A DNA stretch of 64,000 nt from NCBI GenBank assembly GCA_033442325.1, contig JAWQFM010000030.1:657855-721854 (forward strand). Reading direction: 5' to 3'. Below, in pieces: positions 48,901-54,005 of this stretch. The DNA comes from Salpingoeca rosetta. Lineage: Eukaryota > Protista > Choanoflagellata. The notes below the pieces were generated by a model. That model saw nothing but the letters and a program-made list of their open reading frames with translations, had not been told where the DNA came from and searched no databases. The position numbers and the translations under genes are program-made. Positions within the stretch are counted from its first letter, which is position 1. Every line of letters begins with the position of its first letter.

Positions 48901-51900
48901 TCTTGAAGCAGCACGAGTTGGAGGCCAAAATCTTGCGCCACCGCAAGGGTCACGATGAGGATGTGGTCAAGGGCGCCATTGAAAAGGTGCGGATGCACCT
49001 CAGCCGCGACATTCTCCCCGCCATGATCCGCCTCCTGCACAGCGTCGTGGCAAAGGGCGAGGAGTGGCAGTTTGCGTCCGTAAGCTTCGCCGGCATCCCT
49101 AACGACGACAACCACCCAGGCCACCTCAGCCATGGTTTCTTCAACCGCTGCTTGCAGAACACCAACGGACGACGCATGTACCACAACTCGCTCATCCACC
49201 GCACCATTTACTGGACGGGGCAGCGCTGGGAGGTGACGAGCGACGTGAACAACAAGGAGCAGGTGGAGGCATACTCGAAAGACGACGTCATGTCCCCAGA
49301 CGCTGCCACCAGCTGGTTCGTGTATGTCACCAAGAGGACTGAGGGCGAGTTGACCAAGGGCTTTCAGGAAATGGAGCGCGTTCGCGTCGTGGAGCCAGAC
49401 ACAGGTACGACGGTGATGTCGTGCGTGTGTGTGTGTGTGTGTGTGTGTGCGTGCATGTGCATGTGTGTGTGTGTGTGTGTGTGTGTGTGTGTGTGTGTGT
49501 GTGTGTGTGTGTGTGTGTGTGGGTTAGGCTGGCATGGGACTCGCCTAGGTGCGTTATGAGGTGCAATTTAAACGTTCGATCGCTCACATCTTACATACAC
49601 ACACCACGTCGCAACGCACACAACACACAACACACACACACACACACACACACACACACACACACACACACACACACACACACACACACACACACACACA
49701 CACACACACACACACACACACACACACACACACACACAGGCATGCGCTCGCGCTACACGGGTGCGCTGATCAACAGTGTTGTGGACATGATGCGAGCCGT
49801 CGACCTGTGCGTCACGCAGGGGTCCGATGTCATCCTCAACCTGAAAGGGTTGCTCCAGCACGCGGTGCGCCTCGTGCGCATGGGCGGGGACGCTTCCTTC
49901 GCCGACACCAGCTTGCTCACACTTTGTGGCCTCGTGTGCAAGCTCTCCCCAAAGATGGAGGGCGTGCACGACGTGATGGTGGAGTGCCTGCGCCACAACT
50001 ACTTTGACGCCTTCGTGCAGGGGTTCTACCACACCTCCCGAACCACCATCGGCAAGCTGCCCAAGTCCTCAAGCACAGACAGCTTCGACCACAGCACGTA
50101 CCCCTTTTACCAGTTCCTTGAGCACATCTTTGCCGCACGCAACCTTCTGTACGGGCTGAGGTTCCGCCTGCGTAGTGGCGCCCTTGTCCCGCATACGTTC
50201 AACGGCGCCGTGGGTCAATTCTCCAAGGACCAAGTGCTGCAGATGTACGAGACGGGGCTTGATCGCTTGCATGGCCTCATCGCCAAGTACGTTGCGTTCC
50301 GCATGTTCTGCCTCTTCCTCGACGCCTTTGGTCGGTTGGGCGATGTCGTGCGTCAGGGCACTGAGGACTTGCTGGAGGCAGGGCGACACGAGAACAAGCA
50401 GCTCGTGCGTGACAGCAAGGATGCCAGGCACAGCAGCAAGGATGGCGAAGATGGCAGAAAGAATGGCGACGATGGCAAAGACAGCAAGAAAGGCAACGAT
50501 GGCAAAGACAGCAAGGTCGAGGAAAAGGATTTCATAGACATCGACACAGAACGGAAGGAGGATTGGGTGGAGTGCCTAAGCCAGGGGGTGTCACAGCTGG
50601 TCAAGTCCCCTGACTCTGTAGAGGTGTTTGCCCGCGACCTTCCGTACGCCGCGGCAGAACTCACACTTGTTGTTGAGGAGGCGGTGACCAACACCATCAG
50701 CCAGACCGCGAAGCCCTTCCAGCACCGCATCTCCCAGCACGTGATCAATCTGCTTGCCAACATCACGGAGCACGCCGTTGAGCGCGTGTCGAGCCAAGAG
50801 GAAGAGAATGAGGAGGAGGTGGTGGAGGAGGAGAAGGGTGGGCCGAGCAAGGAGGAGAAAGAGAAGAAGAAGGGTGAGCCGATTCAAGACGCGCAGAAGA
50901 AGAAGAGGAGGCTCAAGCCCAGGGCGGGTGCGAAGAAGAAGAAGAATAAGGACGTCCGGCAGACCAAGGAGGACAAGAAGAACAAAATGAAGCAACGCGC
51001 TTCTGAGCCAAGCATGGAGGAAGAGAAGAAGAAGAAGAAGCAGGAGGAGGAGGAGGAAGAGAAGAAGAAGAAGCAGGAGGAGGAGGAGGAAGAGAAGAAG
51101 AAGAAGCAGGAGGAGGAGGAAAAGAAGAAGAAGCAGGAGGAGAAAAGAGAGTACCAGCGCAAGGTGGAGCTTGTCTCCTCCGTCATCTTCCAAGCCAACC
51201 CCGTGCCCGTGCTCGTGTCCCTGCTGCGAGGTCAGAAGCAGGACAGCAACGTCTTCCGCACCACGGCCCGGCTCAGCACCCAGATGGACTGGTTCACAAG
51301 CGCCCTTCGTGCCCTGGCCAACCTGGCCAAGTCGAAGAAGGAGCACCGCCTGCGCATCGTGCACGAGGGCCTCACCCCTGTCCTCCTCCGCTTCCTCATT
51401 GTCGGAAACCTCAAGCTGCGGCACAACGCCACGCGCTGCCTCATTGAGACGCTCCAGTTCACGCAGGAGAGCGTGGAGCAGTTTGTCAAGGAGGAGGGCC
51501 ACCTCACCGTGCTGCGCCTGGCCAAGGAGGCGACGAACAAGGCCATCACCAGCGTGGACACAAGCCTCGAAGGCGCCCTCTTCAGCGTGCTTGGCGCCGT
51601 GTGCTCTGTGCCCGCGGGCGCCAACGCCCTGGTGGACGAGCCAGACTTTATGGAGCTGCTCTCCAACGCTGCACTCGAGCAAAAGGAGCTGTACACGTCC
51701 GGTGGCGGTCTCAGCGGCGCGCGCCTCAACATGTGCGACAAGGTCAACCTGCTCTTCCTCCTGCTCACGGAGTTGGAGATTTCCGACAACCTTGAGGGCG
51801 TGCAAGCACAACTGTCAGGCCTGAAGGGTGAGCTGAAGGAGTCGTGCGAGTTCCAGAACAGGCTGAAAAACGTGCTGGTCAAGATTGGGGAGGTCAAGCC

Positions 51901-54005
51901 TGAGGGGGGCGACGACACGGGGAACGCCGATGCTAATAGCGCACAAGATGAGGCCGTCGACATGGGCCAGAACGATCCAGATTGGCAGCCAGAGCACGAG
52001 AGCGACCGTGATGAGCTTCAGGCGGGCGAGCTCTTGTCGTGTGACGGCGTTCCCTTGCGGAAGGACGAGACGTATGTGTACCAGCTGGCCACACTGGCCA
52101 ATCTGTGTGACATGGGCGAAGAGCATGAAACGAAGGACGGGAACGACAAGAAGGAAGAGAAGGGGGAGAACGGAGAGAAGGAAGGGAAGGGGAAGGCCAT
52201 GTGTTTCTTGTCTTACTCTTGGAGTCACAAGAGGCGCTTCCAGAAGCTTGATACGTATCTCGAGAACACTGGCTTGAAAGTCTGGCGCGACGAGAACGAG
52301 ATTTTCAAGGTACGTGTGTGCGCGTGTGCGCGCGTCTGTGTGAATACGTTTACATGTGTGTGTGTGCGGGCGCGTGTTATGTACTCTTTGTGCTCGTGAG
52401 TATGTGTATGTGTATGTGTAAGCGTGTGTGTGTGTGTGCGTGCGTCGCACGGTGCTGTGAATTGTGCGCTCTCACCTCAATCTCACATCAAGTCACATTA
52501 TTCGTTGACTTGGCTTGCGAGTGCAGAAAGCCAGCATGCTTGAGAGCATGGCCGGTGGCATCCATGGGTCTGCGTGCGTGATTATTGACTACTCGCCAGA
52601 GTATGCCAAGTCGCACAACTGCCGTGCCGAGTTACACTATGCCAATAAACTGCGCAAGCCGCTCTTCTTCGTCAAGACGACGCGCAAGAATGTATGTTCT
52701 TTGTCATCGCTTGTGCGTTGCATCCTGATCCTGATAACCAATGCACTGCGTCTAGGGCTAGCTTGATGCTCCACATGTCAACAGGAACTCACATTGTACT
52801 TCAACACACACATGCACACACACACTCACACACACATACACACACACACACACATACGTGCGCAGCCACCGCCTGCGTCAGCGCTTGACTTTATTCAAGC
52901 CGGACACTTGTACGTGGACTACTCCAAGGTCAGTTCGACCAAAAGTGTCAAGAATCTCAACAAACAGCTGCGCAAGCAGATAGGGGCACGTCTCAAGCTC
53001 CCACCATTCAAGGACGACGCAGCAGATGCTGACGAGGACGAGGAAGAGGAAAAGGACGCCCTAAATACCTTCCTCTATTTGGCCGGTGTCGCCAAGTACT
53101 CGCGCGAAGCGCTTTCCGATCACGGCGTCACTTACCCGCTGCTCAAGTCGCTGTCGCGCGAGGACCTGCGCCACACGGGCGTGCTGATGAGCGACATCGT
53201 GAAGATAGAAACGTCAATTAACGAGTGGATGTCACGATTCAATGAACAGGTTGCAGAATGTCTGTTGAAGATTGGTATTCGGCATCCCAACACTGTGGAT
53301 GTCATTGCTCGGCTCAAGATCAGCACACCCGAGGAGCTCAGGCGTTCGAAGCTCATGTGGTTGCGTTCCAAAGGGGTCGACGAGGAAGATGCCGAACGCA
53401 TTGTTGACTTCTTCAAGCCAAAAGAGCAAAGCAAGCAAGGCCCCCCGCAACAGGCGTCCTCTGCTCCCTCGAATCCCAGCACTAGGCAGTCAAAGGTGCA
53501 AGTGTCCACCTCGTCAATGCAACAGCAGCAACAGCGTGGGCATGCACAACCACCGCCACCATATCGCTCGGCACGTTCAACCATGGAGCGTCCTCTACCA
53601 CCCACGCCAAGCATGGAACCAGTCACAGCCCTCGAGCAGGCGTCATCCTCCAGTATGCACCCAGAACTGTTTTTCGACAGTCCTCCACCAGTACCGCCAC
53701 GCCGTATCACACAACACCAAGGTGTGTGGGCGTGTGCATGAATAGAGAAAAGGGCGTGTACGGGTGTGTGAGTACGTGTGTGTGAGTGTGTGAGTGTGTG
53801 CGTGCGTGCACGAGTGTTTCTGTGCGTGTATGTGTGGGTGTATATGTGTGCGTGTGAGTGTATTCGAGTGAGCGAGTGGGAGCAATAGCAACGCCTTCCT
53901 CCTTCATTTCACTGGAGCTGTGCTGTCACTCACGGTGTGATTCACTCACCGACAACAGATGGCTTTGGATTTGACGGGGCCGTTTTCGACGTGGATGAGC
54001 CTTGA
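45965..54005 (+). CDS. Large ARM-repeat / TIR / tandem-SAM protein with Cys clusters and a possible N-terminal PH-like region
   Basis: Ten phase-compatible exons: 45965-46087, 46501-46566, 46714-46797, 47121-47273, 47430-47660, 47892-49403, 49740-52308, 52527-52691, 52866-53721, 53959-54005. ARM-like ALRALANLA...RIVHEGLTPVLLRFL; TIR CFLSYSW...GLKVWRD...SPEYAKSHNCRAELHYA; two SAM-like units (FLYLAGVAKY...LSREDLRHTGV; CLLKIGI...LRSKGV). Confidence 0.85.
46829..46904. repeat. (ATG)n trinucleotide microsatellite in an intron of the TIR gene
   Basis: About 25 perfect GAT units after the GTAAGT donor at 46798. Confidence 0.95.

Follow-up and report, generated by a model that had tools for sequence, protein, structure and literature searches.

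A stretch of 64,000 nucleotides of Salpingoeca rosetta DNA (C30:657855-721854 of a 55.4-Mb, 68-contig assembly; hereafter the window) was analysed, and a gene that combines armadillo (ARM) repeats, a TIR domain and a SAM domain was located on its forward strand. The window is eukaryotic DNA, with long open exons between which stand short introns rich in (TG)n and (CA)n. The whole assembly was searched for paralogs and domain matches, and three paralogs of the gene were found, referred to below as C11, C3 and C33. In the first-pass annotation of the window, the stretch 51160-53420 had been presented as an ARM-TIR-SAM-SAM protein. As read from the sequence, this stretch is neither a whole gene nor a single open frame. 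It covers the part from ARM to unit 2, the 3' two-thirds, of a single long gene with several exons, which extends from about 47382 to at least 53738.

Gene extent, exons and predicted domain order

The predicted features of the gene are as follows, with a slash marking the junction in splice sites.

47382-47660, + strand: probable upstream exon by splice consensus, first ATG at 47382, donor CTG/GTGCGT at 47660/47661
47892-49404, + strand: upstream exon of the N-terminal extension, ending at the phase-1 donor ACAG/GTACG
49740-52309, + strand: large exon, one open frame, donor AAG/GTACGT at 52309/52310
51275-51547, + strand: armadillo repeats, about two recognisable ones within a longer helical region (51164-51778)
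52199-52309, + strand: TIR piece 1 (strand A, helix A, strand B and start of the BB loop), TIR_2 profile positions 2-34, 19 bits, with equivalents in C11, C3 and C33
52310-52526, + strand: intron 1, in the BB loop, phase 0, (TG)n-rich, GT..AG, with an intron at the same position in the paralogs
52527-52691, + strand: exon of 165 bases (CAG/AAA to AAT/GTATGT) with TIR piece 2 (helix B to strand D), 55 residues, TIR_2 profile positions 40-87, 27.7 bits, E 4.1e-6
52617-52634, + strand: NCRAEL motif, with codon 52629-52631 for the candidate catalytic Glu
52692-52865, + strand: intron 2, phase 0, (CA)n-rich, GTATGT..GCGCAG, the frame resuming at 52866
52866-53006, + strand: TIR piece 3 (strand E and helix E), placed after TIR_2 profile position 87 and kept in C11 and C33
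53055-53237, + strand: unit 1, a divergent SAM domain, with five helices in an AlphaFold2 model (residues 1-70, predicted local distance difference test score (pLDDT) of about 89)
53238-53417, + strand: unit 2, a second, copy-specific helical unit (model pLDDT 45-80)
53418-53738, + strand: low-complexity Pro/Gln/Ser tail, ending at the stop codon 53739-53741 or at a splice donor near 53722

The domain order read from these features begins with an N-terminal region that has a poly-Gln run, a Cys cluster and no assigned fold. It continues with a conserved helical region, a disordered Lys/Glu-rich (K/E-rich) spacer, the ARM region, an acidic linker, the TIR domain, the SAM domain and the copy-specific helical unit, and ends with the Pro-rich tail. 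A protein of about 1,800 residues is implied by the homologous upstream exons in the C3 paralog. ARM, TIR and SAM were assigned to one gene because the ARM region and the first TIR strand share an open exon, because the intron positions and phases are kept in the paralogs and because the upstream exons of C3 are homologous and syntenic.

Upstream, homologs of the frame 47892-49404 lie directly 5' of the C3 ARM exon and are oriented alike (tblastn E 4.5e-60 and 2.6e-30), and the reading frame is restored when the phase-1 donor at 49404 is joined to the acceptor CACAG/GC at 49740. A gene start at the ATG at 49742 was ruled out by this in-frame splice from homologous upstream exons, which is kept in the C3 paralog. 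Part of the exon 47382-47660 is also conserved upstream of the C3 paralog (tblastx), and no domain was found in this exon by Pfam scan. The N-terminal extension (47382-49404) was without a match in the Pfam and Protein Data Bank (PDB) sequence searches. It carries a poly-Gln run (48417-48458), two conserved blocks with a loose aromatic pattern in common, and a Cys cluster, CCFPLCCCCCC (48519-48551), which could be a palmitoylation site.

The first part of the large exon, to about 50788, is a conserved helical region. Next come the low-complexity K/E-rich spacer at 50789-51163 and the ARM region at 51164-51778, and the exon then closes with an acidic linker, in which a pre-TIR segment (51989-52108) is conserved, and with TIR piece 1 (52199-52309). 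The spacer is an expansion of about 125 codons in the window copy, and other sequence is found at its place in C3.

The tail contains PPxY at 53550-53564 and PLPPTP at 53592-53609, two motifs that are both kept in the C11 paralog (L002 1999-2060), and PPLY is also carried by the C3 tail (L009 about 6500); the motifs may be docking sites for WW and SH3 domains. An AG/GTG donor-like site at 53722-53741 is found at the same codon in the C11 copy (L002 about 2160), whose frame then enters (TG)n. The codon match suggests one further 3' exon, and none was found by similarity searches.

The paralogs differ in their completeness. The C11 copy (C11:109985-113392) has the same introns and one SAM domain, is 70-93% identical to the window copy over the large exon (91-93% over the ARM region), and is without unit 2 and without, or nearly without, the K/E-rich expansion. 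In the C3 copy (L009), ARM, TIR and a tandem of SAM domains are preceded by the N-terminal extension; over the large exon the identity is 29-46%, the lower value being that of the helical region and the higher that of the ARM-to-TIR part. The C33 copy (L010 5556-6427, minus strand) has the three TIR exons of the family, the core exon being 70% identical, and no ARM or SAM similarity was detected within 3.4 kb upstream of it.

The ARM, TIR and SAM domains

The ARM region was recognised by profile search. The profile of two sequences (window 51164-51940 and its paralog) was compared with the PDB sequences, and designed armadillo-repeat proteins were matched (4rv1, E 4.6e-18; 4hxt, E 4.8e-9), as were importin-alpha and UNC-45. 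The best part was at profile positions 38-128, corresponding to about 51275-51547. With Pfam, ARM_ARMC5 (E 8.5e-5) and Arm (E 0.073) were both under their cut-offs. The core of the region (51284-51478) is nearly invariant among paralogs (C3 and L005) that are 29-48% identical elsewhere: 57 of 65 residues are identical to C3, though the helical N-terminal region of C3 is only 29% identical. Synonymous differences were counted at 9 of the 57 identical codons in this core versus about 30 of 64 in the flanks. Such conservation could reflect either strong constraint or local gene conversion.

The TIR exons were scored and compared separately, not as a joined protein, with a TIR_2 cut-off of 28 bits. 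Pieces 1 and 2 fall in order along the TIR_2 profile, and piece 3 alone was without a Pfam match. The C11 equivalent of the exon 52527-52691 reached 31.5 bits, above the cut-off. By profile alignments, the Glu of NCRAEL was aligned to the Glu of WCxxEL in TLR1, TLR6 and the plant SNC1 TIR, and also to the Glu of the TIR encoded by a separate SAM-then-TIR gene on contig C14; the Asn of NCRAEL was aligned to the Trp of TLR1, TLR6 and SNC1. The Glu is invariant in the four paralogs (NCRAEL, NCRSEL, RCNAEL and SCRAEL).

When the core-exon profile of the four paralogs (53 residues) was searched against the PDB set, the best matches were SNC1 (E 0.01), TLR1 (E 0.048) and a plant TIR cyclase (E 0.065), followed by TLR6, RUN1 and RPV1, and not one SARM1 chain was matched at E <= 10, though SARM1 is abundant in this set. 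By its core segment, the TIR resembles the classical eukaryotic (plant/TLR-like) sequence type. For the exon that spans helix B to strand D, the best matches are the plant TIRs (SNC1, RUN1 and RPV1) and TLR1/TLR6, which share with it an aligned S-x-x-C-x-x-E-L with the Glu superposed. These are weak matches (E 0.01-1.6) within an unrelated architecture, and the Trp of WCxxEL is replaced here.

Unit 1 was identified as a divergent SAM domain by structure and by sequence. The top Foldseek matches of its model were nearly all SAM domains (target template modelling score 0.69-0.79, root-mean-square deviation (rmsd) 1.6-2.6), and the VIA-align matches covered whole SAM domains, with Z values of 9.7 for ASK3, 9.0 for TNKS2 (tankyrase 2), 8.5 for ANKS3, 8.1 for EphA4 and 6.9 for the SARM1 SAM tandem; at Z 9.7 to 8.0, 60-70 residues were aligned with an rmsd of 1.5-2.6. 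Because small helical folds can reach Z values of such size, the sequence evidence matters for this call. Unit 1 itself matched SAM_1 below the Pfam threshold (E 0.09, profile positions 8-61 of 64), and its equivalents in two paralogs matched SAM_EPH (E 0.0015 and 0.0016), the C3 copy also matching SAM_2 (E 0.032). The profile of unit 1 from three paralogs was aligned by hhalign to a profile built from 15 genuine SAM domains of the same genome with a probability of 91% (E 1e-6, 55 columns), while an armadillo piece as a control gave E 0.38. Atlas feature searches returned weak SAM-type leads (0.79-0.84), and no meaningful match was obtained in PDB sequence searches with both units or with the SAM family profile.

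Unit 2 was aligned in register to the generic SAM profile by hhalign with a probability of 12.7% (E 0.0023, against the E of 0.38 for the same ARM control), was without a Pfam SAM match and reached 0.7% with the family's own SAM profile. Its origin as a duplicate of unit 1 was ruled out by BLASTP, which gave nothing, and by the same hhalign value of 0.7%. It is absent from C11, and a genome search with it returned the self-match alone. A true SAM tandem is present in the C3 paralog, where the extra unit precedes the conserved SAM domain and gives an hhalign probability of 91% (E 1.1e-6) against the SAM of the family.

Of the domains named in the first-pass annotation, the ARM-like repeats and the TIR domain with NCRAEL were therefore confirmed by these profile matches and alignments, and the claim of two SAM-like units was confirmed for unit 1 and not for unit 2. 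In the Pfam scan that had been proposed there as a check, TIR_2 was found above threshold in the paralog exon, while TIR_2, ARM and SAM of the window copy all remained sub-threshold.

TIR, SAM and ARM are common building blocks in this genome, as shown by at least 38 TIR_2 and at least 33 SAM_2 matches and by two further genes. One is the C14 gene (G000:C14:846631-847479; L007:3632-4480), in which the SAM domain precedes the TIR; this SAM matches that of SARM1 by sequence (E about 5e-4), and the TIR matches bacterial NADase TIRs (Cat1, E 4.5e-8; AbTIR, E 5.8e-5). The other is a large gene on the minus strand of G000:C30:16000-22000 (L008), in which Pfam detects a SAM domain (SAM_2, 23 bits) after a long TIR. 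The TIR of the latter is by eye nearly the same as the F2UB80 construct listed in Table S4 of a preprint (10.64898/2026.04.20.719644). Within the window, the ARM-TIR-SAM gene is flanked by two similar genes with repeated 'GLIYGIP...VLIIDP' propeller-like units (55013-56851 and 43786-45054).

Candidate functions: enzymatic switch or scaffold

The gene probably encodes, though this is held with modest confidence, a switch under regulation that acts in signalling or cell death, an independently assembled analogue of SARM1. In such a switch, self-association of the SAM domain would bring the TIR domains together, as TIR enzymes need for the formation of their active site, and the clustered TIR would process nicotinamide adenine dinucleotide (NAD+), with simple hydrolysis likelier than cyclisation given an Asn in place of the usual Trp. 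The highly conserved armadillo surface would bind a ligand or partner and so gate the TIR activity, and the PPxY/PxxP tail would perhaps add regulation.

Several points weigh against a switch of this kind. For this gene, a NADase activity, its activation through oligomerisation and its auto-inhibition by ARM are proposed by analogy, and all splice junctions were inferred from consensus sites, frame continuity and paralog conservation. The Glu alone is no proof of activity, because no activity was detected for some TIRs that carry it (10.64898/2026.04.20.719644). The AlphaFold2 model of the ARM region is poor (pLDDT 45), so that the ARM call rests on sequence, and a pocket in it like the allosteric nicotinamide mononucleotide (NMN)/NAD+ pocket of SARM1 would be conjectural. 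The window copy has one SAM domain plus a helical unit, the description SAM-SAM holding for the C3 paralog, and not every SAM domain polymerises. Word-indexed protein searches, for which the large exon, the part of it from ARM to TIR and the ARM region of C3 served as queries, found no homolog outside the genome; this null is likely due to the full protein being above the length window and to low-complexity words dominating. An exhaustive representative search with the piece comprising the TIR end and the two units returned two spurious repeat proteins. Finally, the Trp four residues before the Glu is kept in none of the four paralogs (Asn, Asn, Arg and Ser, respectively). This Trp is a feature of cyclising TIR enzymes, and its loss, by work on AbTir and plant TIRs, favours hydrolysis over cyclisation, or a loss of activity.

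Because of this effect of the Trp, substantial weight was given to an alternative in which the TIR is a non-enzymatic scaffold, although it is considered the less probable explanation and on the whole unlikely. The protein would then be an adaptor that acts through TIR-TIR, SAM-SAM, ARM and PPxY/PxxP contacts, for example with choanoflagellate TLR or kinase-TIR proteins, and no NAD+ would be cleaved. Besides the replaced Trp and the existence of Glu-bearing TIRs of no detected activity, such a role is favoured by the core TIR exon having its closest sequence matches in TLR1/TLR6 and plant TIRs, by the conserved peptide-docking motifs in the tail and by the many choanoflagellate TIR proteins in which TIR is paired with interaction domains (Richter et al. 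2018, PMC6040629). It is opposed by the invariance of the Glu among paralogs whose identity in the core TIR exon is only 47%, and by the finding that most non-TLR eukaryotic TIRs retain the Glu and many are active, among them one from S. rosetta (F2UB80), for which, as for many eukaryotic TIRs, Glu-dependent production of cyclic ADP-ribose was reported, with F2UB80 assayed in E. coli (10.64898/2026.04.20.719644).

Relation to SARM1 and meaning

With the animal axon-death NADase SARM1 and with dSarm and TIR-1, the window gene shares ARM, SAM and TIR in one polypeptide, the five-helix SAM fold and a Glu at the TIR's catalytic position, but the order of the domains is different: SARM1 is ARM-SAM-SAM-TIR, its tandem SAM domains building an octameric ring, whereas the window gene has ARM (51164-51778), TIR (52199-53006, spliced), SAM (53055-53237) and the helical unit. 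The parts list given in the first-pass annotation, in an order unlike that of SARM1, was thus upheld, with at least one SAM domain. The TIR of SARM1 is of the SARM1/bacterial type, whereas the core TIR of the window gene (53 residues compared) is plant/TLR-like; SARM1 keeps the Trp before the Glu, and Asn is found in the window gene. The long extra N-terminal region, the K/E-rich spacer and the PPxY/PxxP tail are also unlike SARM1.

Because the core TIR is unlike that of SARM1 and because a separate gene with a SARM1-like SAM domain exists on C14, the ARM-TIR-SAM combination is best read, from the sequences compared, as an independent, convergent assembly and not as a rearranged SARM1, in agreement with the independent assembly that had been proposed in the first-pass annotation. 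Descent from the same ancestral gene as SARM1 with shuffling of the domains, to which the common three domain types and the Z value of 6.9 between the predicted SAM and the SARM1 tandem would fit, is considered very improbable, since the domain order differs, many other SAM domains outscore that of SARM1 structurally, the TIR profile matches plant and TLR TIRs and leaves that of SARM1 unmatched at E <= 10, and the C14 gene combines its SARM1-like SAM with a bacterial-NADase-like TIR. Choanoflagellate SARM1 homologs that retain the Glu have been reported (Richter et al. 2018, PMC6040629), and the C14 gene is the best candidate for them in this genome; its upstream frame is not armadillo-like by eye, so it is not called an ortholog.

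That the window copy is a decaying or unexpressed duplicate whose open frames are remnants, as its own long K/E-rich expansion and extra unit might suggest, is scarcely credible, since every exon is open, consensus GT..AG sites stand at positions shared with the paralogs, the differences from the paralogs in the ARM region gather mostly at third codon positions, and the catalytic-position residue and docking motifs are kept.

The nearest described architecture is that of the invertebrate and choanoflagellate ARM-TIR proteins, with which the window gene shares armadillo-type repeats N-terminal to a cytosolic TIR; in the window gene the ARM repeats come first and the TIR after, both within the uninterrupted exon 49740-52309. 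Arm is among the domains found with cytosolic TIR in several choanoflagellates (Richter et al. 2018, PMC6040629), and ARM-TIR is a recognised molluscan class, with 11 genes in the Aplysia immunome (PMC9334734). Unlike the catalogued ARM-TIR proteins, the window family has an extra C-terminal SAM domain, which domain catalogues would omit because it is scored by Pfam below thresholds. The Roc-COR-type TIR proteins of S. rosetta (F2UB80 and the gene at C30:16000-22000) come from the same organism and share a cytosolic TIR and, in the latter, a C-terminal SAM domain, but differ in having other N-terminal modules and a longer TIR (about 220 residues in the tested construct) and in showing no sequence-level paralogy.

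The convergent assembly may be extended into a fuller proposal, which is put forward with considerable doubt: choanoflagellates would have built a SARM1-like switch from another TIR lineage, in which a ligand-gated ARM region restrains a SAM-oligomerised TIR NAD+ hydrolase, possibly with a membrane tether at the Cys cluster and control through the PPxY tail.

Since ARM-TIR proteins and active choanoflagellate TIRs have already been reported, the finding is modest on its own. What is new is a SAM domain overlooked by domain catalogues, together with how far the gene really extends and how its paralog family is made up; as a novelty, it amounts to a SAM-bearing form of the known ARM-TIR proteins. 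If the gene is indeed an ARM-gated SAM-TIR switch, ARM-gated and SAM-driven activation of TIR would be independent of domain order and would have arisen at least twice, and the gene could be used to find out whether domain order matters for auto-inhibition and for activation by oligomerisation. Such a switch would also add to the emerging view that enzymatic TIR signalling is older than animals.

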